Shown here one piece after another: positions 1 to 16,696 of a stretch of DNA of 64,000 nucleotides (positions are counted from its first letter, which is position 1; each line of letters opens with the position of its first letter). Source of the DNA: Piromyces finnis finn (Eukaryota > Fungi > Neocallimastigomycota); the NCBI GenBank assembly GCA_002104945.1, contig MCFH01000053.1:248001-312000 (forward strand), in the 5' to 3' direction. The translations under genes and the position numbers were made by a program. The notes below the pieces were generated by a model that saw nothing but the letters and a program-made list of their open reading frames with translations, ran no database searches and had not been told where the DNA came from.

Positions 1-356
1 ATAATTAAATTTTAGAATTTGTGTTTATAAATTGAAATAATTTAAATAGATTTATATACAATATATATATTTAATTTAAATGTATAAAAAATATAAATAA
101 TACATATAAAAAATGAAATTTTTAAAATATTAATAAACTTATTTTTATAATTGATATTATAATATTATAAATTTAAATATATAAATTACAATTTAATTGT
201 TTTTAAAAATACAAATTCATAACAAAATAAAACTACGAAAACATAAAAAATGAAATATAATCAATTTAAAATAATCAATACATATATCAATAAATTCAAA
301 AAAAAAAAAAAATAATAATAATAATAATGAAAATAATGATAACAAAAATAATTTAG

Positions 357-1802
357 ATGACCGATCACTCTAAGTACGCTTCTCCATTAACTGCCAGATA
401 CGCCTCTAAGGAAATGGCTTACAACTTCTCTGACGACAGAAAGTTCAGTATCTGGAGACAACTTTGGATTAACCTTGCTGTTGCTGAAAAGCAATTAGGT
501 ATTACTGATATTACTGATGAAGCTATTGAACAAATGAAGGCCAACATTCACAATATTGATTATGAAGTTGCTGCTGCTGAAGAAAAGCGTAGACGTCATG
601 ATGTTATGGCTCATGTTCACACTTTTGGTGTTGTTGCTCCAGCTGCTGCCGGTATTATTCACTTAGGTGCTACTTCTTGCTATGTTACTGATAACTCTGA
701 ATTAATCAACATGCGTGATGCTTTAGATATTGTCATTCCAAAGTTAGCTAGTTGTATTAAGAGTTTATCTGACTTTGCTGTTAAGTACAAGGATCTTCCA
801 ACCCTTGGTTTCACTCACTTCCAACCAGCTCAATTAACTACTGTTGGTAAGCGTGCTTGTTTATGGCTTCAAGAACTTATTTTCGATTTAAGAAACTTCT
901 CTCGTGCTAGAAATGATATTCGTTTCAGAGGTGTCAAGGGTACTACCGGTACTCAAGCCTCTTTCATGACTTTATTCAACAGAGACCATGACAAGATTGA
1001 ACAACTTGATGCTCTTGTTACTAAGTTATCTGGTTTTGAAAAGTCTTACGCTGTTACTGGTCAAACTTACTCCAGAAAGGTTGACTTAGATGTCCTTAGT
1101 GTCTTAGCCTCCTTCGGTGCTACTGCTCACAAGATTGCCACTGATATTCGTTTATTAGCTCACTTAAAGGAAATTGAAGAACCATTCGAAAAGGATCAAA
1201 TTGGTTCTTCTGCTATGGCTTACAAGAGAAACCCAATGCGTTGTGAACGTGTTTGCAGTTTATCTCGTCACCTTATGGCTCTTTTATCTGATGCTCACCA
1301 AACTGCTTCTGTTCAATGGTTAGAACGTACTCTTGATGATAGTGCTAACCGTCGTATTTCTATTCCAGAAGCTTTCCTTACTACTGATGTTGTCCTTACT
1401 CTCTTACAAAACATCTTCCAAGGTTTAGTTGTTTATCCAAAATCTATTGAACGCCGTATCAAGCAAGAACTTCCATTCATGGCTACTGAAAACTTCATTA
1501 TGGCCCGTGTTAAGGCTGGTGGTGACCGTCAAGTTTGTCACGAAGAAATTCGTGTTATGAGTCAAGAAGCCGCTAGAATGGTCAAGGCTGAAGGTAAGGA
1601 AAACGATTTAATTGAACGTATTAAGAAGAACGAATACTTCCAACCAATTATCGACCAATTAGATTCCTTATTAGACCCATCTACTTTCATTGGTCGTGCT
1701 CCACAACAAGTTGAAAACTTCATGAAGAACGAAGTTCAACCAATCTTAGAAGAATACGCTGAAGCTTTAAGCAACGCTCACCAAGAAGAAGTTAACGTTT
1801 AA
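357..1802 (+). CDS. ADE13: Adenylosuccinate lyase (eukaryotic ADSL/Ade13 type), intronless, 481 aa
   Basis: N-terminal [40 protein letters not shown], and the fumarase/ASL superfamily signature [11 protein letters not shown]. Strong codon bias typical of a highly expressed gene. Confidence 0.97.
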
Positions 1803-2120
1803 GCAAAAAAGTAATTTATAATTTATTCCAAAAAAAAAGTAGTGTAACCAAAAAAAAGAAAAAAAGTTAAAAATTAATAATGAATAGATAATATTAATTT
1901 TAAGTTTTAGAAAAAAATCATGGATATAGAAATTTTTAATAAAAATTTTAGTAAGAGTTTTAATATACTATCCATTAATAATAACATATATGTAAATAAA
2001 ATAAAAAAAAAATAAAAAAAATTTAAATTATTAAAAAAAAATTTATAGAAATTTTAAAAATGGCAAAAGCTTTTTTTTTTTTGTAAATGAAAACATGGAT
2101 AATTTGAAATTTATGGATCA

Positions 2121-2185
2121 TGTGAAAATAAAATACATTCCAAAATAATATTTTATGTATTTTTTATGTATTTGTATTTTATAAA
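2121..2185 (+). repeat. Copia 5' LTR, left piece (first 65 bp)
   Basis: Same sequence as 13621-13685 (tgtgaaaataaaatacattcc...ttgtattttataaa). Confidence 0.97.
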
Positions 2186-2432
2186 CCCTCTTGGGAACGT
2201 GCCTTCATTTATTTAATAAATGTAGTTTCTCAAGGGGGTCTACTCATGCTCATGGTACTGAGAGAGTAGAAAGAATTAAATCCAAGTATTGCGCAATGGA
2301 TGCTTGGTGCCCTCTTAGGAATGTGCCTTCATTTATTTAATAAATGTAATTTCTCAAGGGGGTCTACTCATGCTCATGGTACTGAGAGAGTAGAAAGAAT
2401 TAAATCCAAGCATTGCGCAATGGATGCTTGGT
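2186..2432 (+). repeat. Two tandem 124-bp units forming multiple hairpins at the LINE 5' end
   Basis: Unit 1 starts at 2186 and unit 2 at 2310. Four internal substitutions between units. The sub-motif gctcatggtactgag occurs a third time at 2463-2477. Confidence 0.95.
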
Positions 2433-3075
2433 TAGTCTTCAAGGGAAAATTATTAGGACTAAGCTCATGGTACTGAGCGATTAAAAAACATTTTATTCAT
2501 CAAATTTAAGTATTTGATGAATAAGTGAATGTTTGATTTTTCAGGTAAGTTTGTATAGTATTTAATTAGAAGAGTAATACATTTTGTTGCTGTATTTTTT
2601 CTTTTATTCATGTATTCATGTAGTACTACTCTTCTCTTGTAAGAATCCAATGTAGTCAACTTTAGCATTTGCATTGTACTTTTATATTCATGTAGCTATT
2701 GTTGTATTGTTTCTTGTAAGAGACTGATTCACTCTACATCATGTAAAAATACTATTCACAAGCTTTCTGGTGTCGACATTCTTGATTCAAATTTTTTACC
2801 AATTTAAATATTTAATGAAAAGTAAAGTCAAACAAGTTTAGTGTCAAAAAGCGAATCGAATTTACTAACAACAAACCAAAACTAGAATTTTTAAAGAAAA
2901 TTTACAACTAGAATTCAAAAAAAGAAACTTTAAACAAAGCATCGTAACAATTTTTGTACTATCCAGTACTTTTAAGAAGAGAGAGAGAGACAGATTTTTT
3001 TCCATATACGTTATATTTGTAATTTTTATTAGTATTTATTTTATATTCAATATTTTTTAATTAGAATTTATTATC

Positions 3076-6000
3076 ATGTCAGTCCTTTATATTAAAGATA
3101 AGAATTATATCAGACGTGGTACCCGGTCTTATGGTATCCCCTTAGATGATATTCGCTCCTTCTTTATCCGTGGTATTCGATCATGGTCAGTAAATATGCT
3201 ATGGGAAAAACTCGAGGTTATTCTAGAAGATAAATTTAATTCAGTTATTAGTGTTAAATATTTTCAGACTTTCAATGATCACTTTTTCTTAGTCAAGGTT
3301 CATGGTTCATCAAAAGATTGTATTAAAATCTTACACATGTTAAAGAAGAAACTTTCAGTTACCTCAATTTCCTTTTCAGCTCGTAGTAGAAGGAATCACA
3401 AATACACTTTTTCCACTCTCAAACGTAAAATTTTAGTTTCTAATAAACATCAACATTCTATTCAACAATCATTTCAACAATCAGTTCAACAATCAGTTCA
3501 ACAATCTCATCAACAATCCGATCTTCAACAAGATCTTCAACAGGATCTTCAACAAGTTTCCCATCATGAAAATATTCCAGATCTACAGCAAACACAATTT
3601 CAATCTCAACATTCAACAATTAATTCTAATAGTTCTATCAACTCTGATAACAGTTCAATAGTTGATAGTTCTTCAGTTTCACAGCCATCTAGTAATAGTT
3701 CTACTTATTCCTCTGATGCATCATCCATTAATAACGATGACTTTAATAATAATAATAATAGCAACGATTCTTCCTCATCCAACAAGCCTGATAACTTTTC
3801 TTTTTGTCTTAGTTGGAACACCAATGGGTGGAATCATGAAAAGAGAGATAGTATTAGCTATTTCACAGCTATTTTCAAACCATTATTCTTATGTTTCCAA
3901 GAAACTGGTAATGGTTCTGGATCGAATACAGATTATCCTTGTCGTGTTACTTTGCGAAACTATAGACACTTTTTCAAGAAAGCTGACGAATCAGTTCCGG
4001 GAATGAGAGGTTTATATTTAGGTTTTCACAATTCGTGTCAAGCCTCACTTGAAAACTTCTCTGGAAAGTATATTATTTCTATTTATACTTTTAGTCTCTG
4101 GAATAGATTCAAATGCTCGATTGGAAATGTTTATATGCCTCATAGTCATCACAACATCTATGTTGATCATGCAAAGTTAGAAGTTCGCTTGTGGTTACAA
4201 ACTCATTCATCCCATCCATCGATTCTTGTTGGTGATTTTAATATGTCTAAAGTAAAATTATCCAACTGGTTATCAACTAATGGATTAGGAGATTGGGAAA
4301 TTCTTCCGCTTAGAGGGTCTACTATCTCTTGGACTCGAGGTGATCAATCTTCCGACATTGACCATGCTCTTATCAATTCGAAGATGAAAGATCTTATTCA
4401 CTCAGGATCATTTATAAATAATTTTTATCCTGTATCAGACCATAAGCCACTTCTTATTAATGGTAAAATTATTCCTATGGAAGATTTTTCTAATGACTTT
4501 AATGTTCCTAAGAAAATTCTGAAATGGAATAGATTAAAATGTATTGAGGAAAAGGAATCTATTCTCAGTCATAATAAATTCCAAATACTTTCAGCAAAAT
4601 TCAACGATCCTAATGTTTCTACAGATGAACTTTCCAAAGAGTTTACTTCAACTGCTTTTTCAATTGCAGACGAGCTCAGTATTACCTCAGCAAATAATGT
4701 TATAAAGTCTTCATTTCATATTTCACAACAAATTTTTAATCTTCAAAAAATCAAAATGAAGTTGTATAAGAGATTTAAAAAAGAAAGAATTTATGATATA
4801 GATGAATTTATTAAAAGAATTAAAATCTACCGTAAACTCATTGATTACATCCACAAAAGATGTAATGAATTTAGGAAGCAAGAATATCTTCATTGGATTA
4901 AAACAGGATGTGAGTATATGAAGAGTCATAATCCTAAGAAGGCCTGGAAATGGATCAAGAAAACTGCAAAAATTGGAAAAGATTCTTTCTTTATTGCTCA
5001 ACCAATTAAAAACAAAAATGGAGAATTAGTTGTTGCTACGGAAGAACAACTAGATGTGTGGCATGATCATTTCGAAAAGCTTGCATCAGATCCAAGTGGT
5101 GTAAGTCTTGATTTGGAGCATTGGTATGAAGAACCAACGAATAAACGTTTTTCACTCCCTATGCTTGATGAATGGGATATCAACCAAGATATTAGTATTG
5201 ATGAAGTCAAGTCAGCTATCCTCTCTACTCCGAATTATAAAGCATCAGGTCCGGATGGTATTCCAATTGAATTTTACAAAGCATTAATTCCATCAAGTAA
5301 TGATTCTAATAATGCTACAGATAATAATTCTTCCGGTAATACCACTTCAGATAATGATGCTTATGGTTTAAATTTTATTCTTAAATTATTCAACCGTATT
5401 TGGGATGGAGACTTCCCCAACTCATGGAATGAATCCAGTATTGTTTCTATTCCTAAGAAGGGAGATTTGACAGATTGTGATAACTATCGAGGTATATCAC
5501 TTATCAATAATGGTATTAAGTTGATTTCCAAAATTGTCACCACTAGAATCTCAGAATATGGTTTAAAGAATAATTTCATTAGACCTGAACAATTTGGTTT
5601 TCGAAAAAAGGAAGAAAGTATTAGTCTTTTCATTTCAATCCAAGAAATATGCCGTAGACGTCAATTAGATAATAAAGAGACATATTTGGCCTTTTTAGAT
5701 CTCAGGAAAGCATACGATTCAGTCCCAATCGGTAATATTCTCCATAAATTAGATTGTTTAGGAATCCGAGGTAAGAGTTTACAATTTATCAAAAATTTAT
5801 ATTTAACATCTAAGGCTAATGTCAAATTAGATGGACAATTCTCGAAATCTTTTGATGTGAAGAAAGGAGTCCGTCAAGGATGCCCTCTTTCTCCTATTCT
5901 CTTTAATCTCTTTATTAATGATATATTTAAAGAGTGTGAAGATCTCGGAGTCAGTTTAGGTGACACTCGATGCTGTGGTGGACTTTTTGCAGATGATATA

Positions 6001-7617
6001 GTTATTTGTGCTCCAACAAGAGGATGCTTAAAAAAGATGCTTAGAAGAGTTAATGAATGGGCCTTGTATAATGAAATGGAATTTGGTATCCAGAAGTGTT
6101 CAACGATGGTGATTCGTCCTGAATCAATAGAAAATCAGAACAAGAGAGATCCAACATTTTACTTAGCAGGACAACCCATTCCAACTACTGATTGTTATAC
6201 TTATCTTGGTGTTCCATTTGATAAGAATCTGTCCCTTAAACCAGTTATTAAAGCTCTTAATAACAAGGTTTTGAAAGGGCTTTTTTCAGTCAGTAAATTC
6301 TTAAGAAATCCTAATATTCCTATTCCCTTCAAAAAGCTAGTACTTAACTCACAAGTGATTAGCAGAGTTTCATACTTTGCACCATTACTTGGATCCAACA
6401 AAGCCAGGTCTAGTATTGCACAGAAGCATGTTAACAAAGGAATACGATGGGTTGCCGGAGTTCATAAAGCTGTATCGTTTATATCTTTATACTCTATTTC
6501 AAAAGATTTGAATATTCCTCCATTGTCAGCCAAATGTGCATTAGCTCAGGTTAGATGTTTTAACAAATGGAAAAACTCAAATTGTATTATCTCATACCTT
6601 GTCAATTACATTCCTAAATTTAGAAAATACACGTGGTGCAAATCCAGTAGGACACTTGATAAAAAACTAAAGAAACATGGAGATGTTAAAGCAGTTAAAA
6701 ACTTTTATTGGAAAGATCTCAAAGGGAATTCAATCAAAGCGCAATATTATGATGATAATAAGTTTATTGAAACTAAAGATTTTATTAAATTATGTTATGA
6801 GTACCCAGAGTTTGCCTATGGCTTCTACTGGCTATTGAAAGCAAGAAGCGGATACAAGTTGGATGCTAGAGTTGCCAAAGCTGCCAAATTTGTTGATCCA
6901 GTTTGTCCTAACTACTGTCCATGTTGCAAGTGTGGAGATCAAAGTATTAAACATTGGTTATTAGATTGTCCAACATTTAGAGATATCCGTATTAAACATT
7001 ATGATTCCATAGTCCAGCTATTAAATTTTTTCAGTCAACGTAATTCCAATAGTCCTATCAATAATAATGAAATTGATAATATCAGTAGAGATAGTAATAA
7101 CATTAATAGTAATAGTAACAATAGTAGTAATAGCAATAGTAATAATAACAATAGTAATAGTAACAATAGTAATAATAACAATAGTAGTAATAGAAATAAT
7201 AATATTAGTAATGATAGCAATAGTGAAGATAATAATTCTAATTTAGATAGTAATTTAGTTAATGATAGTAATAGTTCTAATAATCCGGTGAATATTAATG
7301 TGTATGATTATTCTAGTGTGTGCAGTAAAATATTTAAATTCCTTCTTGGGGGAAGAAGTTTTAACAATATCAATTACAATTCAAGGGAATGGAAAGAACT
7401 TTGTAAGCGTCAGATTCAATCTGGTACTAATGAAGGAACACCATTCTTGACGGTAACCGCGGAACTTCTAACCAAAATCATGCCTTTTGCTATTGGCCAG
7501 CAATGGTCAATGTTCAAAAGGTTTGAAGCAACATCCAAGAGCGTCAATGCTGAAGAAACAGTAAGACAGGCCAGGAGGGCCAGCGCAACCAATGGAGATC
7601 ATAATTTTGTCCCATGA
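3076..7617 (+). CDS. LINE polyprotein: RRM-like N-terminus, APE endonuclease, reverse transcriptase, C-terminal CCHC-type zinc finger (1513 aa)
   Basis: APE motifs SWNTNG, LCFQET, GNVYMP, ILVGDFN, SDIDH, SDHKP. RT motifs SGPDGIP, YRGISL, QFGFR, FLDLRKAYDSV, GVRQGCPLSPILF, LFADD, YLGV. Zinc finger CPCCKCGDQSIKHWLLDC. No RNase H seen. Confidence 0.96.
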   Translation: MSVLYIKDKNYIRRGTRSYGIPLDDIRSFFIRGIRSWSVNMLWEKLEVILEDKFNSVISVKYFQTFNDHFFLVKVHGSSKDCIKILHMLKKKLSVTSISFSARSRRNHKYTFSTLKRKILVSNKHQHSIQQSFQQSVQQSVQQSHQQSDLQQDLQQDLQQVSHHENIPDLQQTQFQSQHSTINSNSSINSDNSSIVDSSSVSQPSSNSSTYSSDASSINNDDFNNNNNSNDSSSSNKPDNFSFCLSWNTNGWNHEKRDSISYFTAIFKPLFLCFQETGNGSGSNTDYPCRVTLRNYRHFFKKADESVPGMRGLYLGFHNSCQASLENFSGKYIISIYTFSLWNRFKCSIGNVYMPHSHHNIYVDHAKLEVRLWLQTHSSHPSILVGDFNMSKVKLSNWLSTNGLGDWEILPLRGSTISWTRGDQSSDIDHALINSKMKDLIHSGSFINNFYPVSDHKPLLINGKIIPMEDFSNDFNVPKKILKWNRLKCIEEKESILSHNKFQILSAKFNDPNVSTDELSKEFTSTAFSIADELSITSANNVIKSSFHISQQIFNLQKIKMKLYKRFKKERIYDIDEFIKRIKIYRKLIDYIHKRCNEFRKQEYLHWIKTGCEYMKSHNPKKAWKWIKKTAKIGKDSFFIAQPIKNKNGELVVATEEQLDVWHDHFEKLASDPSGVSLDLEHWYEEPTNKRFSLPMLDEWDINQDISIDEVKSAILSTPNYKASGPDGIPIEFYKALIPSSNDSNNATDNNSSGNTTSDNDAYGLNFILKLFNRIWDGDFPNSWNESSIVSIPKKGDLTDCDNYRGISLINNGIKLISKIVTTRISEYGLKNNFIRPEQFGFRKKEESISLFISIQEICRRRQLDNKETYLAFLDLRKAYDSVPIGNILHKLDCLGIRGKSLQFIKNLYLTSKANVKLDGQFSKSFDVKKGVRQGCPLSPILFNLFINDIFKECEDLGVSLGDTRCCGGLFADDIVICAPTRGCLKKMLRRVNEWALYNEMEFGIQKCSTMVIRPESIENQNKRDPTFYLAGQPIPTTDCYTYLGVPFDKNLSLKPVIKALNNKVLKGLFSVSKFLRNPNIPIPFKKLVLNSQVISRVSYFAPLLGSNKARSSIAQKHVNKGIRWVAGVHKAVSFISLYSISKDLNIPPLSAKCALAQVRCFNKWKNSNCIISYLVNYIPKFRKYTWCKSSRTLDKKLKKHGDVKAVKNFYWKDLKGNSIKAQYYDDNKFIETKDFIKLCYEYPEFAYGFYWLLKARSGYKLDARVAKAAKFVDPVCPNYCPCCKCGDQSIKHWLLDCPTFRDIRIKHYDSIVQLLNFFSQRNSNSPINNNEIDNISRDSNNINSNSNNSSNSNSNNNNSNSNNSNNNNSSNRNNNISNDSNSEDNNSNLDSNLVNDSNSSNNPVNINVYDYSSVCSKIFKFLLGGRSFNNINYNSREWKELCKRQIQSGTNEGTPFLTVTAELLTKIMPFAIGQQWSMFKRFEATSKSVNAEETVRQARRASATNGDHNFVP

Positions 7618-7827
7618 TAAAATTTTGATCTTTGGCTCGGTGTCCCATTGGAAGTCAAATACAATTATTATACTTTAGTATGATAGTGGCTTTCTTACTT
7701 TAATTAAAATTACTAGAATACATTATACCCAATTTTTATTCATTTGTGTTTATTTAAACATATTTTTTTTATTTTTATTTTATTTTAATTTTTATATTTC
7801 ATGTATTATAATTTTAATTAAATTAAT

Positions 7828-7852
7828 AATAAAGTTTAAAATATTTGATGCC

Positions 7853-7912
<60 letters not shown>
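7828..7912 (+). terminator. LINE polyadenylation signal and retro-copied poly(A) tail
   Basis: AATAAA at 7828-7833 lies about 22 nt before a 57-nt uninterrupted A run that abuts the right TSD copy. Confidence 0.9.
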
Positions 7913-7915
<3 letters not shown>

Positions 7916-8096
7916 TATTTTATAAAATTATAAATTAATATTGTACTACATTTTTATTCTTTGGTTATTTTTTAATAAAAAGATTTTAAGAAAGTTACAA
8001 TATTTATATTATAAAATAAATATAAATAAATAAAAGATTATAAAAACCCAAATAGTTTTATAAATAAATTTAAGTGTAAACTAAATTTATCTGACA
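7913..8096 (+). repeat. Copia 5' LTR, right piece (includes the duplicated 14-bp LINE target)
   Basis: Matches 13672-13855 and ends in tctgaca. Confidence 0.97.
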
Positions 8097-8110
8097 GATT
8101 AAGAGTCTCA
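8097..8110 (+). promoter_or_regulatory. Primer-binding site complementary to the anticodon arm of tRNA-Lys(CUU)
   Basis: GATTAAGAGTCTCA directly follows the LTR. Its reverse complement TGAGACTCTTAATC matches positions 27-40 of eukaryotic tRNA-Lys(CTT) as I recall it from the vertebrate gene. The host tRNA gene is not in this window. Confidence 0.8.
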
Positions 8111-8144
8111 ATTGCTCTTATATTTAAGTAAGTTTTTTTTTAAT

Positions 8145-11100
8145 ATGTCAAAAAGAAAATCTAACGGAGATACTGGATCAATTCCTATATTCGATCCTAC
8201 CGTTATGCTAGGAAAGGTCACTTATGAATTGAACAATAAAAATTTCATAACGTGGCAAATGTTTATGAGGAATATTTTAAATTATTATGGTCTTGAAGAT
8301 TGGGTTGATGAAAACAAAACCCCAAAGATCAAAAGTGACGAAGGAATGGATATCGACGGAGAAGAATATCTAAAGGCACCTTTTGAAATCAATACCTACT
8401 ATGATAAGAACGTAACCGAAGATGACTTAAAAACAGATAGGAATATCCAATTTTTAATTAGGTATACTTTAGGCCCAAACTGCCAACAAGATATCCAAGA
8501 TAGGTCTTTAACAAGCTACGAAATGTGGAAACTATTAGAAGACATTTATTTAGGGGATAAAATAGAAAGAAAGAATAGGCTTATTAAGGAAACAAACTCC
8601 TTAAAATACGACCCGAAAGAAAGTTTCTCAAGATTTGTAAATAAGTTAAATTCCAACTTTAATAAGTTAGAACAACTAAATGTGAAAATAGATGATGAAG
8701 AAAAAATTGGTTTACTGTATCAAGCCTTACCAGAAAAATATAGGAAAGTCACAGTCCTTAAGCATGAAGACTGGGAAGAATGCAAAAAGGACACAGCAAG
8801 AATGATAGATAAGATGAACAAATTTGATCCGAAAGAGAAATCTGAAACCTTCGGAATTAGACATATCTTTAGTGTTGAAGGTAGTTACAAAGGTGATAAA
8901 AGAAAGGAAAGTACTAAATACTACCGCAACAAACAAAGTAATAATCATAATAAAAATACAAATAAAGGAAAAGAAAAGTCCAATGAAGAAAGAAATTGGA
9001 ATAACAAAAATAAACAAAACATTACATGTTATTTTTGTCATCAAAAAGGACATACTGTAAAACAATGTCGTATTCAAAAAGAACTTTCAGAAGAAGTTAC
9101 AAGAAGGCTAAGAAAAGAGAAAAATAAAGGCAAGGAAGCATTTTTAGCAACAGGTGAAATAGTAAATAAACAAACCACTGAAGACTTTGAACCAGAAGTT
9201 GGATATCAAGATTTGTTTACAGTTGATTACAATACATTATTTGACAATAACAATGATGAATGTAATAATAAATCATGCAATTACGTATCTTGTGAAAATG
9301 TACCTACAAGTTTTACTACATGGACTTTAGATTCTGGTGCTTCTAATCATATTACCAAAGATATAGGAATTCTCAAAAATGTTTTTGAACATGTAGAACC
9401 AATCAATTATGCAAATGGAGCGACTACAAAGTCAACACATATGGGTGAAGTAAATGGATCTATTAATGAAGAACCAATAAAATTAGAAGATGTAATGTAC
9501 ATCCCAGATGTAAAACGAAATTTAATTTCTGTTGCCAAGTTAGTTAAAAGTGGCTACCAAATAATCTTTGATGAGAAGAACAATAATGTATTTGCATATA
9601 TAAAAGATAAGAAAACAGATAATGTATACGAAGTTAAAGCAAATGAATATGATGTATTCAATTTGTACATCAAAGAAGGTAATGTAGTTAATAATTACTC
9701 AATGTGCGATAATGTACGAAACAATGGTGAATACTGGCATAGAAGAATAGGGCATCTGAATTTCAACAATAATGATGAAAAGAACAATATTCACAATTGT
9801 ACAATATGCATGAGAAGCAAAATGAAAGAAATCCCTCATAAAAGGTCAGATAGTAGAGCATCAAGTGTTTTGGAACTAGTACACATCGATTTGGTAGGTC
9901 CAATCACACCATCAATTCATGACAACGTATACTTTTTAAGTATCTTAGATGATTACAGTCGATATGGATGGGTAATATTTGTCAAGAATAAAAGTGATGT
10001 TTTCAAAGAATTTGGAAATTGGCTGAATAAAACTACTAATGAATTATCATCCAAAGTAAAATATCTTAGAAGCGATAATGGAACTGAATTCACTTCTAAT
10101 AACTTCAAGGAGTTATGTAACGAATATGGAATAACTCAACAATTCACCGTCCCTGGAAATCCGGAGCAGAATGGAAGAGCAGAAAGATTCAATGGAAAGT
10201 TAATAAAAACTGCTACTGCAATGTTAATGGACGCAAGGTTATGTCGTCGCTTTTGGGAAGATGCTGTGAAAACAGCGAACTATGTTCATAATCGAGTTCC
10301 GCACAGTGGAATTAATGGTGAAATACCATTTGAATTAATGTACAACAGAAAAGTTGATTATAAAAATTTAAGAGTATTTGGATGTAAAGTGTATTATTTA
10401 GATGACAGTAACATTCCAAAATTTCAAGACAAAACTAAGGAGGGAATCTTTATCGGATATGATGAATCTTCAGTAGGATACAGAATATTCGACATAAAAT
10501 CAAGGAAAATTAAAGTGAAAAGAGTCGTAGGTTTTTTAGAAGAAGAACCTGGTGACTACAATTATAATTTAGAAAAAGAAAATAATAATGAAACATATAG
10601 TCAAGATACAGAAACTTTTCAAGTAAGGAACTTTAATTATATGTATGATAAAGAAAATGAAAACAATAACAATAAAGACAAAAAAGAAAAGGACATTTCA
10701 AATGAAAATGATAAATTAATGAATGAAAACCTAGAAACACTCAATGATAAAACTAGTAATAAAGAAGACTTAAAAGAAGTAAATTATGAAGAAAAATTTA
10801 GAAATATAGAAGAAAAGCTGGATAAGCTCACGTCACTATTAAATAAAGAAAAAAATAATAGTTCTGAAAGTTTTATGCAAGTCTGCGAGGACACTAATGA
10901 TAGTAATATGAATATAGAAGACTCAGAAGAAGAAGACTTAAATCTCTTAGACTATATTAAACTAAAAGAAAAGAAAAAAGAACGTTTGAACAAAAATAAT
11001 TACCAGAAAATTGAAGAAATGGAAGAAAATAAAGAAATTAAAATAAGTACTTCAATGGAATCTGTAAGTGAAACCAATAAAGAAAAAGAAAACAATAATG

Positions 11101-13598
11101 ACATTTCAGGAAGTAACGACGGCAATATAAATAACTTTACCTTGGAAGAAAATAATTTAAAATATAATAATTTAAAATATAATAGTGCTGACGAAACTGA
11201 AATTTGTGAAATTAAAGAAGTGAATATAAAGAGAAATGACGACAAGAAAAATAAAAATATAAACAGTAAAGACAATTCAAATATATCAAAGGATAATAAA
11301 AGGAATAATAAATACCTGAATGCAAAAGGAAATGTTTATTTTATAGAAGAAAATTCAGACATTGTAAATAAAAATGAATTAATTGAAGAAGTATTAAAAA
11401 CACCATCAGAAATGGAGATAAATGATTTAACTGGAGAAATTGACAATAATGATTTTTTAAATATCCTGAGTCCTGACATTGATTTAGGAACAAGAAAGAA
11501 AATTGATTTTGAAAATATTGAGAGTGTCAAAAATAATATAAATAAAAATAATAGAAAAGAAATAGAAAATAATTATTCAAATGTAAAAGTAAATTATAAG
11601 AATGAAGAATATTATAAGAAAAATTACATACCTATTAATGAGAATGAAATAAGAAGAAATTTGAATAAAGAAAATATCAATATTCCTGAAGAAAAGTCCA
11701 AATTTAAAAATATTTCTGATGAAAAAGAAAGTAATTTAAATAATCAAAATAAAAAGGAATATAATTTGAGAAATTTAAAAAATAAAAATGAAATTAAAGA
11801 TCCAATCAATAAAGATAAATCTAAGAAAAAATTTTTTGATAAGAAAAAGTTATTATCAAAACAAAATTTTTTGAATAAGAGAAATCTAAATAGAAAATTA
11901 AAATCCAATAAAAATTTTAAATTAAATGAAAATCATCCACCAAAGGAAGAAAAATTCCCAAGAAAGCGGAAACTTGTTCCAAGTGAAGATGTCATAGAAG
12001 AAAAATTTAGTAAGCCACATGAACATGAACCAGAAAAGAAGAAAATTAAGGAAGTGGCGCTAACTATAGCACAAATCAAGGAGCCAAATTCCTATAATGA
12101 TATATTTAAAAGAAAAGATAAGGATAAGTGGATAAAAGCAATAGAAGCCGAATTGCTAAATATGAAAGAAAGAAAAGTGTTCAAAAGAATAGATGAAGTT
12201 CCAGAAGACGCCAATATTATTGATTCAAGATGGGTATTTAAGATAAAAAGGAATAGCACTGGTGAGATAGAAAAATACAAAGCTAGACTTGTAGCCAGAG
12301 GTTTTACACAAGAATATGGAGAAGACTACAATGAGACCTTTTCTCCTACTCTAAAACAAGACTCATTAAGAATCCTAATAGGAATAGCTGCAATTAATAA
12401 CTATAAAATCCATCAATTAGATGTTAAGGCCGCATATTTGTATGCAGATTTAAAGGAAGATATATATATGAAAGCACCTGAAGGAGATAAAATGTATAAA
12501 AAAGGATTATGGAAATTAAATAAAGCATTATATGGCTTAAAACAAGCAGCAAGAGAATGGAATAACAACATCAGCAATACTCTCATTGAACTAGGATTTC
12601 AGAAATTAGTTAGCGAACCATGCATATTTATAAAGACCAAAAACAATAAATTAGTATGTTTAGTTGGAATATATGTTGATGACATCCTAATAACTGGTAA
12701 AAAGGAAGAAATAGATAAAACTATTAAATTAATTAAAGAGAAATATGTTATCACGGATGTTGGTGATGCAAATTTCATCATAGGAATCAAAGTAGAAACG
12801 TTAAAAGATGGGTATTTGTTACATCAAGAAAGGTATTTAAAGGATATATTACACAAATTTGGTTTAGAAAACTGCAGAGGATCAAAGACAACTACACCAA
12901 TCAAGAATGATGAACAACTCAATCAGCCTTTTGACCCTACTACTTATAGAGCTGCAATAGGAAGTCTTTTATATTTAGCCATAGGTACTCGTCCAGATAT
13001 CTTATTTTCAGTAACCAAAGCATCTAGGTTCTCACAAAATCCTACTATCCAAAATTGGAAGAATGTATTACAAATATTCAAATATCTGAAAGAAAATCCT
13101 CATTATGGAATCCGTTTTGAAAGAAACTTAAATTTGAAGATTTTTGTAGATTCAGACTATGGGGGAGATGAAGAAACAAGAAAATCTACCACTGGATTTG
13201 TATTTTTATTGGGAAATGGACCAACAAGCTGGTACTCAAAACTGCAAAAATGTGTATCAACTTCAACCGCCGAAGCAGAATATTATGGACTTTGTGAATG
13301 CTCAAAGCAAGCTCTGTGGTATAGAAATATTTTTAGTGAATTAAAAATAAAGGAAGAATGCTTAAAAATCAATATTGATAATCAAGCAACTATTTACAAC
13401 GCAAATAATGAAACGATTAATCCAAAGTCAAAACATATTGATATTAAGTACCATAAAGTAAGAGAATTAATTAAAGAAAATAAAATCAGTCTAGAATATA
13501 TAAAATCAGAAGAAAATTTAGCAGATGGTTTTACTAAATACTTGAATAAAAATAAAATGAAAATATTTAGAGATAGTTTATTATATAAATACAAATAA
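8145..13598 (+). CDS. Copia Gag-Pol polyprotein, uninterrupted, 1817 aa from the first ATG
   Basis: Zinc knuckle CYFCHQKGHTVKQC. Protease WTLDSGASNH. Integrase HRRIGH...CTIC, HIDLVGP, RSDNGTEF, QNGRAER. RT KARLVARGF and YVDD. RNase H FVDSDYG, TAEAEY, KSKHIDIKYH, ENLADGFTK. The ORF track starts at a TTG (8112); the first in-frame ATG is at 8145. Confidence 0.97.
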   Translation: MSKRKSNGDTGSIPIFDPTVMLGKVTYELNNKNFITWQMFMRNILNYYGLEDWVDENKTPKIKSDEGMDIDGEEYLKAPFEINTYYDKNVTEDDLKTDRNIQFLIRYTLGPNCQQDIQDRSLTSYEMWKLLEDIYLGDKIERKNRLIKETNSLKYDPKESFSRFVNKLNSNFNKLEQLNVKIDDEEKIGLLYQALPEKYRKVTVLKHEDWEECKKDTARMIDKMNKFDPKEKSETFGIRHIFSVEGSYKGDKRKESTKYYRNKQSNNHNKNTNKGKEKSNEERNWNNKNKQNITCYFCHQKGHTVKQCRIQKELSEEVTRRLRKEKNKGKEAFLATGEIVNKQTTEDFEPEVGYQDLFTVDYNTLFDNNNDECNNKSCNYVSCENVPTSFTTWTLDSGASNHITKDIGILKNVFEHVEPINYANGATTKSTHMGEVNGSINEEPIKLEDVMYIPDVKRNLISVAKLVKSGYQIIFDEKNNNVFAYIKDKKTDNVYEVKANEYDVFNLYIKEGNVVNNYSMCDNVRNNGEYWHRRIGHLNFNNNDEKNNIHNCTICMRSKMKEIPHKRSDSRASSVLELVHIDLVGPITPSIHDNVYFLSILDDYSRYGWVIFVKNKSDVFKEFGNWLNKTTNELSSKVKYLRSDNGTEFTSNNFKELCNEYGITQQFTVPGNPEQNGRAERFNGKLIKTATAMLMDARLCRRFWEDAVKTANYVHNRVPHSGINGEIPFELMYNRKVDYKNLRVFGCKVYYLDDSNIPKFQDKTKEGIFIGYDESSVGYRIFDIKSRKIKVKRVVGFLEEEPGDYNYNLEKENNNETYSQDTETFQVRNFNYMYDKENENNNNKDKKEKDISNENDKLMNENLETLNDKTSNKEDLKEVNYEEKFRNIEEKLDKLTSLLNKEKNNSSESFMQVCEDTNDSNMNIEDSEEEDLNLLDYIKLKEKKKERLNKNNYQKIEEMEENKEIKISTSMESVSETNKEKENNNDISGSNDGNINNFTLEENNLKYNNLKYNSADETEICEIKEVNIKRNDDKKNKNINSKDNSNISKDNKRNNKYLNAKGNVYFIEENSDIVNKNELIEEVLKTPSEMEINDLTGEIDNNDFLNILSPDIDLGTRKKIDFENIESVKNNINKNNRKEIENNYSNVKVNYKNEEYYKKNYIPINENEIRRNLNKENINIPEEKSKFKNISDEKESNLNNQNKKEYNLRNLKNKNEIKDPINKDKSKKKFFDKKKLLSKQNFLNKRNLNRKLKSNKNFKLNENHPPKEEKFPRKRKLVPSEDVIEEKFSKPHEHEPEKKKIKEVALTIAQIKEPNSYNDIFKRKDKDKWIKAIEAELLNMKERKVFKRIDEVPEDANIIDSRWVFKIKRNSTGEIEKYKARLVARGFTQEYGEDYNETFSPTLKQDSLRILIGIAAINNYKIHQLDVKAAYLYADLKEDIYMKAPEGDKMYKKGLWKLNKALYGLKQAAREWNNNISNTLIELGFQKLVSEPCIFIKTKNNKLVCLVGIYVDDILITGKKEEIDKTIKLIKEKYVITDVGDANFIIGIKVETLKDGYLLHQERYLKDILHKFGLENCRGSKTTTPIKNDEQLNQPFDPTTYRAAIGSLLYLAIGTRPDILFSVTKASRFSQNPTIQNWKNVLQIFKYLKENPHYGIRFERNLNLKIFVDSDYGGDEETRKSTTGFVFLLGNGPTSWYSKLQKCVSTSTAEAEYYGLCECSKQALWYRNIFSELKIKEECLKINIDNQATIYNANNETINPKSKHIDIKYHKVRELIKENKISLEYIKSEENLADGFTKYLNKNKMKIFRDSLLYKYK

Positions 13599-13620
13599 TG
13601 AATTTATAACTTTGGGGGAG

Positions 13621-13855
13621 TGTGAAAATAAAATACATTCCAAAATAATATTTTATGTATTTTTTATGTATTTGTATTTTATAAAATTATAAATTAATAT
13701 TGTACTACATTTTTATTCTTTGGTTATTTTTTAATAAAAAGATTTTAAGAAAGTTACAATATTTATATTATAAAATAAATATAAATAAATAAAAGATTAT
13801 AAAAACCCAAATAGTTTTATAAATAAATTTAAGTGTAAACTAAATTTATCTGACA
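13621..13855 (+). repeat. Copia 3' LTR (235 bp)
   Basis: TG...CA termini, preceded by the polypurine tract and followed by TSD GATCA. Confidence 0.97.
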
Positions 13856-14818
13856 GATCACCATGTTAAATAATAATTAAATTAAAATTATTTGTTTTTT
13901 CTATTTTAGTTTGACATTTTAATATGAAAAAAAAAAAAGGGAAAGAAAGATTAGAAAATGATTGTGGATCATTTGTTTATTAAATTGGAGTTTATTTTAA
14001 AGGCTTAATTAACAATAATAAATTTTATTTTTATTTTATGTCTATTGTAATTATTAAAAAGTAAAAAAAAAAAAAGATGGCACCCATTCATACCATGATG
14101 ATCAATAGCATTAATTTTTTTTGTTTAGTATAATTGTTAATATTCAATTATACTAAAGTAACCACACTATCAACACTATTCATTATTAAATCACAACATT
14201 TTATTATTCAACATTCTATTAAAAAAAAAAATGGAAATATGAATGAAAAGGGAGAAATAAATAATATATATATATTTTTTTTTTAATTAATATTTTTAAA
14301 AGATTTCATCTACGTTTATCGAATTCAATTCACCATTATCATCATTGTCATGGTCACTTTTTATAAATATAACGTTAATACCAAAAATAAATTAGATATT
14401 CTATTATTATTATTCTCTAGGTATTTTATTTAATATGAATAGGACTATATTATATATCTATAATACTATTATTAATACTATTTAATGTATACAATATTGA
14501 TGATAATGTAAATCAATTTTTTTTTTGTATTATATCTTAATGATTAGAGTATCAAATAAAAAAAAAAAAATTTCCTTATATTACGATGTAATTGATCAAT
14601 TTTATATATTGTTAATATACAATTATAATTAATTTCAATATATTATATTCCTATTTAAATTATACATTACTGATTTACATTTTTATCATATTTTTTAACT
14701 GAACTTGGTTATTATAAAAAAATTATATATAAAATTAAATTTTTTTTTTTTTTAATATTTTAATATAGATATAGTTTTTACAATTATTTTTCATATATAA
14801 ATATAAAAAAATATAAAA

Positions 14819-16696
14819 ATGGCTCCAAGTAATTTCAATTTAAAAGATGTTGTTAGACCAAATATTTGGGCTTTAGACCCATACAGATGTGCCCGTGATG
14901 ACTATTGGGAAGGTATTTTAATTGATGCTAATGAAAATGGTTTTGGTACTTGTATTAACCTTGATGATAGTGAAATTTCTTTACCAAAACCAAAACCAAA
15001 TGACAAAGATATGAATTCTGATACCCATATTGAAAGATACCCAGATCCACGTCAACTTGATTTCAAAACTTTATTTGCTAAATTCCGTGGTCTTTCTTCA
15101 CCAAATGGTATGTTTGTTGGTGTTGGTAGTGATGAAAGTATCGATATTATTATGAGAGTTTTTGGTGTTCCAGGAAAGGATAAGATTTTAGTCACACCAC
15201 CAACCTATGGTATGTACTCTGTTTGTGCTGCCACTAACGATCTTGGTGTTGTCAAGGTTCCATTATTACTTCCAAATTTCCAACTTGATGTTCCAAAGGT
15301 ATTGTATTTTTTTTTTTTTATTTTTTGAAAGAAAAAACATGAAAACATGAATAGAGTTTATTATAAACATTAAATTTATTAGAACTATTATTTTTTTTTT
15401 CTTTTAAAAAAATTATAAATTAAAATATATGAAATTTTAAATTTAAAATTTATAAATTTCAAATCACATTTTTGGATTATTTTTATATTTATCTATTTAT
15501 TAAATTTATTATTTATTAATATAATATTTCATATGTATTCCTTTTTTTCTAATATAATAATATCAATTCATTTTTCTTTTTTTTTTAAAAAAAAAGGTTA
15601 AGGAAGCCCTTAAGAACGATCCATCTATTAAGCTTGTTCTTCTTTGCTCACCAGGTAATCCAACTGGTTCTTGCATTACTAAGAATGATATTCGTGAAAT
15701 TCTAGAATTTGAAGATTTCAAGGGTATCGTTGTTGTTGATGAAGCCTACATTGATTTCGTTGAAGAAAATGAAAGCAAGGGTAGTGTTGCTACTTGGGTT
15801 AATAAGTATCCAAACTTAATTGTTACTCAAACCTTATCAAAGAGTTTCGGTTTAGCTGGTATTAGGTAAATTTAATATTCATATTAAATATACATATTTT
15901 TTTTTATTCATAATAGCTTTTTTTTACAAGTAAATGAAAAAAAAAATAATTTTTAAAAAAAGTTAAATTACAATTTCTACGAACAATATATTATAACTTC
16001 TTTTTCATTTAAATAATGAATACAAAATAATAGAAAGCATATAAGATTGCAAAATATATATATATAATAATAAAATCAACTTATATTTCATTATTTAAAT
16101 AGATAAAAATAACATAAAAGAAAGAAAATATTTTTTTTTTCTTTAAAATATCCCTATTATTAAAAATTTTATAAAAAAAGAATAATTTTTATTGATATTA
16201 ATCGATTATACTGTTTATTATAATTACGGAAATTAATAGATGTGGTATTGCTATCACTTCTGATGAAATTGCTGCTATTATTAACAAGACTAAGGCTCCA
16301 TACAATGTTTCTACTCCAGCTTCTTTAATTGCCAGAAAAGCTCTTTCAGATGAAAGTATTGCTAAGATGAAGGAAAACATTGGAAAGATTATTGAAGAAC
16401 GTACTAAATTAATTAATACCTTCAAATCTCTTGATGGTGTTGGTGAAATTCTTGGTACTAATGATGGTAACTTTATCCTTGTTCAAGTTGTTAATAAGAA
16501 TGGTGTACCAAGTAGCAACCGTGCTAACAAGATTTACAAGGGTATGGCCAATAATGAAAAGGTTGTCGTCCGTTACCGTGGTAATGAATATGGCTGTCAA
16601 GGTGGTTTAAGAATTACCATTGGTAATGTTGAAGATAATGTTGTATTAGTTGAAAAATTCAAAAAGTTATTAAACGAAACTATTGATGAAGAATAA
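14819..16696 (+). CDS. HIS5: Histidinol-phosphate aminotransferase, 3 exons (14819-15298, 15597-15865, 16240-16696; 401 aa)
   Basis: Motifs LDANEN, RYPDP, GVGSDESID, PPTYGMYSVCA, CSPGNPTG, VVDEAYIDF and the PLP-lysine motif TLSKSFGLAGIR. Both GT-AG introns keep the reading frame. Confidence 0.95.

Follow-up and report, generated by a model that had tools for sequence, protein, structure and literature searches.

The LINE insertion and its tandem 5′ head

The window, by which we mean the whole 64,000-nt stretch of Piromyces finnis DNA that was analysed, is very AT-rich and holds an adenylosuccinate lyase gene (357-1802), the polyprotein ORF of a Copia element (8112-13598) and, inside the 5′ LTR of that Copia element, a LINE. 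The limits of the LINE can be read directly from a 14-bp target-site duplication (TSD), TTGTATTTTATAAA, whose second copy directly follows the poly(A) tail. The sequence upstream of 2186 matches the Copia 3′ LTR as far as TTGTATTTTATAAA, and the 3′ LTR contains the uninterrupted target site (about 13630-13710). The TSD, together with this intact site, indicates that the LINE is a one-piece insertion spanning 2186-7912, with C2186 as its first base. An earlier note on this DNA had claimed that the element starts exactly at the first base of a repeated unit, and the borders bear this out. The claim is partly circular, since with exactly two copies it is the start of the element that sets the phase of the unit; stronger evidence comes from the re-copied heads described below, nearly all of which restart at 2186. 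The two Copia LTRs are about 92% alike over 229 nt (2088-2185 and 7913-8141 compared with 13630-13900), and beside this likeness the intact ORF and the pure 57-A tail of the LINE make its insertion look much younger than the Copia element.

The LINE has a single ORF, in which a reverse transcriptase domain was matched directly, while the presence of an endonuclease is suggested by the relatives and by a conserved block in alignment A1. An exact look-up of the ORF found it not on record, and its best relatives, which come from gut and rumen metagenomes and from anaerobic-fungus assemblies, are at most 63% identical. At about aa 130-240, between the conserved N-terminal domain and the endonuclease, the ORF contains a long insert of low complexity, rich in Q and S, in which QQS/DLQQ motifs recur; the relatives in alignment A1 lack this insert.

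The LINE opens with a tandem repeat. Tandem Repeats Finder reported 2186-2432 as a period of 124 with 2.0 copies and 96% matches, and the differences between the two units are confined to columns 8, 13, 40, 102 and 124. Further copies of the 124-nt unit were sought in the rest of the window by pattern searches and none was found. Behind the second unit, a covariance model built from the two window units (R1) matches 2435-2522 with an E-value of 0.011, identifying a degenerate, shortened third unit (Table 1). At position 2502, within the 13-bp stem of this third unit, most copies of the family have G in place of A, and the G gives a G-U pair.

Table 1. Coordinates in the window of the LINE, its tandem 5′ head and its borders
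Feature	Position	Strand	Basis or remark
5′ target-site duplication, 14 bp, TTGTATTTTATAAA	2172..2185	+	read directly; inside 5′ LTR of Copia element
Head unit 1	2186..2309	+	Tandem Repeats Finder, RNAfold, unit comparison; RNA contigs 2190-2259 and 2257-2346
Unit 1, H1	2186..2238		
Unit 1, kissing site GUGCC	2199..2203		
Unit 1, H2	2239..2270		UGGUAC loop 2253-2258
Unit 1, H3	2282..2307		loop GCGCAAUG
Head unit 2	2310..2433	+	same fold
Unit 2, H1	2310..2362		
Unit 2, kissing site	2323..2327		
Unit 2, H2	2363..2394		loop 2377-2382
Unit 2, H3	2406..2431		
Degenerate, shortened third unit	2434..2524	+	stem 2434-2460; hairpin 2463-2477 with UGGUAC loop; 13-bp stem 2493-2524
Rest of 890-nt leader	2525..3075	+	many UGUA motifs; block 2715-2734 common to related leaders
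Single LINE ORF, 1513 aa	3076..7617	+	reverse transcriptase domain matched directly
3′ UTR and pure poly(A) tail	7618..7912	+	tail 7856-7912, 57 A
3′ target-site duplication copy, TTGTATTTTATAAA	7913..7926	+	directly after 57-A tail

Reads across the 5′ end

In DNA reads of this fungus, the word depth is about 97 in the unique flank, about 45,000 in the LTR part and about 495,000 at 2176-2219, and it then stays between 260,000 and 640,000 as far as 3300, so that the level is held across the first 1.1 kb. The LINE family is thus very abundant. Its 5′ end is fixed: three DNA contigs with unlike flanks end at 2185, and the variable 5′ truncation points that the earlier note had set against its own idea of a defined end were not seen. 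What was found instead is a series of joints at which a partial head of varied length stands before a full head. At five of these go-back joints, which leave from 2253, 2274, 2313, 2388 and 2465, the sequence resumes at 2186 after a single additional base (T, T, T, C and T, respectively). A sixth joint leaves from 2377 and resumes at 2185 after 14 intervening letters; each of these odd joints has a low depth (150-630). The junction within the window follows the same pattern, since unit 1 consists of head bases 1-123 plus a G (G2309), which may have been added at the junction without a template.

Both the constant restart position and the added base are consistent with re-copying of the 5′ end by the reverse transcriptase, which we consider the probable origin of the repeat. 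Nested insertion is excluded for the window copy because one TSD bounds both units. Snap-back priming by a cDNA hairpin was also considered and rejected, as it predicts inverted duplications and not direct ones. As to where the joints leave the template, two independent ones (2253 and 2377) do so from unit position 68, the first base of the H2 loop, and others from unpaired linkers (2274, 2308); the acceptor sites of template switching may thus favour unpaired RNA.

The family is transcribed. In three RNA runs the leader body has depths of about 780-1,580, while the adjacent LTR part has a depth of 0 in these runs despite its DNA depth of about 45,000, indicating that the leader signal is RNA and that carry-over of DNA is not its source. 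The RNA contigs, which carry no direction, include one specific to unit 1 (2190-2259, depth 1,393) and two that span the boundary between unit 1 and unit 2 (2257-2346 and 2257-2343) with no or one mismatch. No splicing is seen in the main leader contigs, 2483-2870 and 2381-2923, and an intron in the 5′ UTR at GTAAGT 2546, which we had considered, was seen in none of the RNA contigs. Further downstream, at 2955-3033, 77 bases with GT..AG ends are missing from one DNA contig of this fungus; none of the RNA contigs has this gap, which may reflect either a deletion or copying of a spliced transcript.

Fold of the head and its conservation

Folding with RNAfold gave -43.4 kcal/mol for unit 1 (z -4.70) and -39.8 kcal/mol for unit 2 (z -3.98), both compared with dinucleotide shuffles. 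The two-unit repeat and the three hairpins per unit that had been described from the sequence were both recovered. H1 comprises unit positions 1-53, with a basal stem of 12-13 bp, an internal loop and an AU inner hairpin; H2 comprises positions 54-85 with the loop UGGUAC; and H3 comprises positions 97-122 with the loop GCGCAAUG. In addition, GUGCC in the H1 internal loop (14-18) can pair with GGUAC in the H2 loop (69-73) to give a pseudoknot. When the proposed structure was scored with this pseudoknot included, 45 of 45 pairs form in both units, so the claim that all four internal differences between the units keep pairing holds: columns 8-45 change from G-U to A-U, columns 13-40 from C-G to U-A on both sides, and columns 102-117 from U-G to C-G. 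Pairing-preserving changes taken from two sequences alone carry little statistical weight, and a shuffle control agrees with this. RNAfold also predicts the three further stems that had been noted after unit 2 (2434-2524), the stretch that R1 scores as the degenerate third unit.

The earlier note had also proposed that the G-U pairs favour the sense strand, and the counts agree, with 54 such pairs on the sense strand and 17 on the antisense; the sense z-score is the more negative in 10 of the 11 heads and sub-regions compared. Over 2186-2530 the folding energy is -113.6 kcal/mol for the sense and -96.2 kcal/mol for the antisense strand, and part of this gap reflects base composition, because the z-scores of the whole 345-nt region are close (-6.46 and -6.13).

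We compared the 5′ heads on the contigs of the relatives and recognised four head types, represented by one to four copies each. The window has type A. Type B heads start at L001:359 and L003:152, and type C heads at L010:1127, L029:724 and L032:181, with a 5′-cut head in L013 and a relative at L034:1139; type D heads start at L005:83, L033:56 and L016:785. One further contig with head-like hairpins (L006) was left out, as it begins within the head. In every head type the unrelated flanks stop just before a pyrimidine run, (T)CCCC or CCCTC, and a T directly precedes the C-run in seven of the eight heads of types B to D. H1, H2 and H3 are all formed in types A to C, while in type D a single long, internally branched H1 is accompanied by an H3-like hairpin. 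The G-run that closes H1 precedes a U in types A to C; in the type D heads of L005 and L033 the closing sequence is GGGG and precedes an A. Across seven folded heads (those of relatives and unit 2) the dinucleotide z-score ranges from -3.3 to -4.0. L001 and L003 have a nearly identical head on ORFs that are 61% and 45% identical, respectively, to the window ORF, with differing leaders behind it; with nearly one head on two ORF families, the head behaves as a portable 5′ module. Viral contigs scanned with two head patterns gave chance matches only.

Type D heads are tandemly duplicated as well, by a unit of about 130 nt in L033 (1-185) and by about 58 nt inside H1 in L005 (83-190), suggesting that re-copying of the head is recurrent across families. 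Two metagenome contigs, L030 (689-1732) and L031, have tandem 150-nt coding repeats for a Cys-rich, chitin-binding-like domain beside a 5′-truncated LINE fragment; these repeats contain TGGTAC and were rejected as heads, being coding Cys-rich repeats. Behind the head, the leader has 13 UGUA motifs over 2536-3075, compared with 3.7 +/- 1.9 expected, and the block TGTARGAGnnTGATTCACTC (2715-2734) is common to the leaders of L001, L005, L010, L011, L013, L029, L032, L033 and L034. This region could be a cluster of binding sites (PUF-like UGUA) or a conserved leader element.

The covariance-model check proposed in the earlier note was run with R1, the model built from the two window units only, in an unfiltered search of 41 kb on both strands. 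Its best two matches are the 5′ heads of L003 (153-245, E 0.0067) and L001 (360-452, E 0.036), both aligned end to end, and the heads of L010, L032 and L033 gave marginal matches. The type B rows pair in 87.8% of the cells of the window structure, compared with 29-58% in slid controls. In the basal stem of H1, two pairs differ between type B and the window on both sides, from U-A to C-G and from U-A to G-U. In H3, where the alignment was anchored on the identical 8-nt loop GCGCAAUG, six of the nine stem pairs are changed on both sides and 96% of the cells are paired; this level of double change was reached by 2 of 500 shuffles, and slid controls gave 0-1 such pairs. A plain MAFFT/RNAalifold alignment of the window head with the L001/L003 head was meaningless and was set aside in favour of the covariance model and the loop-anchored alignment.

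The pseudoknot, too, recurs in the same place with different sequences in three head types, which supports the idea of pairing between the H1 and H2 loops. The site at about nt 13-19 and its partner in the H2 loop are GUGCC and GGUAC in type A, CCGUA and UACGG (UGCGG in L001) in type B, and GUACU and AGUAC in type C (L010, L029 and L032). The probability of finding such a match by chance is 0.05-0.14 per type, a modest statistic, and about 0.005 jointly when types B and C are taken as tests of an idea that preceded them. No such pseudoknot was found in the type D heads (L005, L033 and L016). Covariation within type C is weak: RNAalifold on the L010 group gave two double changes and preferred a small local 5′ hairpin. 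Related LINE families therefore keep the layout of the head with other sequences. Structure is retained across diverged sequences with compensatory changes, as is looked for in RNA of the R2 5′ type, and the module with structure-preserving changes that had been postulated is supported. With about four head types, and with cross-type pairing that rests partly on model-fitted alignments, these comparisons form a small data set, and they indicate a real fold that is under selection in the sense RNA.

Interpretation of the head

We interpret the 124-nt unit, with moderate confidence, as the structured 5′-terminal RNA head of an abundant, transcribed L1-like LINE of this anaerobic gut fungus, and as a putative cis-acting 5′-end module. 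The RNA domain would begin at the first transcribed base, with the pyrimidine-rich 5′ end, (U)CCCUC, locked to the G-run in the 12-13-bp stem of H1. Nucleotides 14-18 in the H1 internal loop would pair with the apical loop of H2 as a kissing pseudoknot, and H3 would present its conserved GCGCAAUG loop. On reaching the 5′ end of the template, the reverse transcriptase would often add one base, switch inside a head RNA and re-copy to the 5′ end; the two units and the decayed third would then be products of such re-copying, and the dimer would now be inherited through RNA. As DNA, the head would most likely overlap an internal promoter that sets the start site, which is likely on general grounds. 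As RNA, the stable 5′ fold would protect the end and/or bind the protein encoded by the element, and in this way ensure full-length copying.

The repeated units at the 5′ end, behind which an older unit has decayed, might also be read as promoter monomers like those of the mouse L1 A, Tf and Gf types, which would act as DNA only, the RNA fold being a by-product of palindromic factor sites such as ATTGCGCAAT. Dispersed LINEs depend on an internal promoter, and the centre of H3 is a perfect bZIP-type palindrome. However, a DNA factor site has no need of complementary flanks, and the stems covary across differing sequences with G-U pairs that favour the sense strand. The double change at columns 13/40 preserves pairing while altering the motif, which points to a constraint on pairing and lends no support to a DNA promoter motif there; a DPE-like reading of GAACGTG at +8 to +16 was rejected because unit 2 alters this motif with a compensating change in the stem. 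Moreover, the 5′ end coincides with the first base of the unit and shows no variable truncation. We therefore regard action as DNA only as unlikely.

It is rather less likely that the kissing site and loop, together with GC-rich palindromic loops, pair between two LINE RNAs, forming a head-to-head dimer that brings a second template to the finishing reverse transcriptase and so gives rise to the re-copied heads. The loops do contain the self-complementary sequences GUAC and GCGC; a pattern search found three UGGUAC loops for two GUGCC sites in the window leader; and two of the re-copy joints depart from the base that opens the H2 loop, others from unpaired linkers. Against this, such dimers are not known for LINEs, the same complementarity is explained by pairing within one molecule, and seven joints are too few to judge.

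The head had further been proposed as a candidate new ribozyme. In this case a new self-cleaving ribozyme class, or a signal for a cellular 5′-processing nuclease, would cut read-through transcripts at the first base of the head and set its pyrimidine 5′ end, with cleavage remaining partial at internal boundaries so that dimers survive. Several observations are in favour of this: in several families the 5′ end lies exactly at the base of a conserved pseudoknotted fold; RNA polymerase II seldom starts on a pyrimidine, so that a processing step is conceivable; some contigs of the RNA runs join the upstream flank to the head at 2187, 2181 and 2310; and the extra bases at the re-copy junctions are mostly T and not the G expected from a cap. 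However, the TSD-bounded insertion holds both units, so the template RNA was not cut at 2309/2310, and the RNA contigs that span this boundary have depths of 1,951 and 1,050, compared with 1,582 and 777 for the leader body. The dimer was present in the template RNA and is present in abundant transcripts; a complete unit, near-identical and with RNA upstream of it, is thus left uncut at its 5′ edge, which argues against an efficient 5′-cleaving ribozyme or an RNase P-like step and is compatible with slow or partial cleavage.

Searches for known RNAs agree with the earlier note, which could not match the module to the HDV-like or twister ribozymes of other LINEs or to hammerhead, hairpin, pistol or twister-sister cores. 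In Rfam 15, no family matched 1800-3200 at E-values up to 10, nothing reached the gathering score over 1-16000, and eight related loci searched at E-values up to 1 gave nothing relevant and no ribozyme family; in particular, covariance models of the hammerhead, twister, twister-sister, pistol, hatchet and hairpin ribozymes matched neither 1800-3200 nor the related loci. ARAGORN found no tRNA-like gene or cloverleaf in 1900-3200 or in seven related loci. On inspection of the RNAfold fold, an HDV-like fold could not be threaded: the bases that follow the first seven are paired inside H1, P2 finds no 3′ partner after H2, and no 3-bp P3 lies beside the 3′ strand of P1. The new-ribozyme reading is thus not supported, efficient self-cleavage of the head is disfavoured, and a self-cleaving or nuclease-guiding RNA of a new kind is in our view improbable. 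Most doubtful of all is a role of the head in translation, as an IRES or ribosome shunt for the ORF behind the 890-nt leader: the 20 upstream AUGs over 2186-3075, all in short uORFs (at most 58 codons) before the start codon at 3076, on a leader whose main RNA contigs are unspliced, would be compatible with non-scanning translation and leave room for such a role, but the start codon is 640-890 nt downstream of the head, no finding connects the head with the recruitment of ribosomes, and one head occurs on leaders that differ downstream.

The reading of the unit as a structured 5′-terminal RNA head can be placed beside other LINE 5′ ends. To our knowledge, the exact fixing of the 5′ end of dispersed LINEs is understood for few elements only. 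Examples of such fixing are the YY1 site of human L1, the Inr/DPE promoters of insect LINEs and the HDV-like ribozymes of R2, RTE and L1Tc. The promoter monomers of mouse L1 are tandem 5′ units of variable number, in which older units decay downstream and copies start at variable points within a monomer; we know of no RNA structure for them. The fungal head resembles these monomers in its tandem 5′ units (two and a degenerate third, with tandem heads also in L033 and L005) but differs from them in that the units and nearly all re-copies start at one base and in that the stems covary. We know of almost nothing on the transcription and translation signals of Neocallimastigomycota, and a literature search found no published description of LINE 5′ ends in anaerobic gut fungi.

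In the L1Tc element of Trypanosoma cruzi, the first 77 nt act both as a promoter and as an RNA fold (PMC3383444), and L1TcRz, a double pseudoknot of the HDV-like kind, cleaves at +1 (PMC3383444, PMC3185411). Like Pr77/L1TcRz, the fungal head is a short module at the exact 5′ end that is common to different retroposon families and travels with the element, combining a role in defining the 5′ end with a folded RNA; unlike L1TcRz, it neither matches nor threads onto the HDV-like fold, and its internal boundary is uncut in RNA. HDV-like ribozymes are found in R2 and RTE, and twister variants in Schistosoma LINEs (PMC3774820, PMC8501958). The fungal element shares with these a structured RNA that starts from the first base of a non-LTR element, but it has no Rfam match or sign of cleavage, and its LINE is dispersed, very abundant and not tied to one host transcript. 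The R2 5′ region, whose RNA binds protein, offers a further likeness in that structure, pseudoknot included, is kept without sequence; there, a stable 5′ fold raises R2-templated insertion, probably by protection of the template, and is proposed to aid full-length insertion (PMC11331408). The fungal head nevertheless has a different fold and belongs to a different LINE clade, and binding or protection by it is only putative.

The head of this fungal superfamily would thus represent a different, uncatalogued solution to the 5′-end problem, namely a fold of kissing hairpins at the very start of the element, mobile between LINE families as a module and repeatedly re-copied by the reverse transcriptase. 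At about 95-125 nt it is a compact, testable RNA with which the protection and recognition of the 5′ end in target-primed reverse transcription may be studied, and it would suit the study of template switching at RNA 5′ ends and of transcription and translation signals in Neocallimastigomycota.
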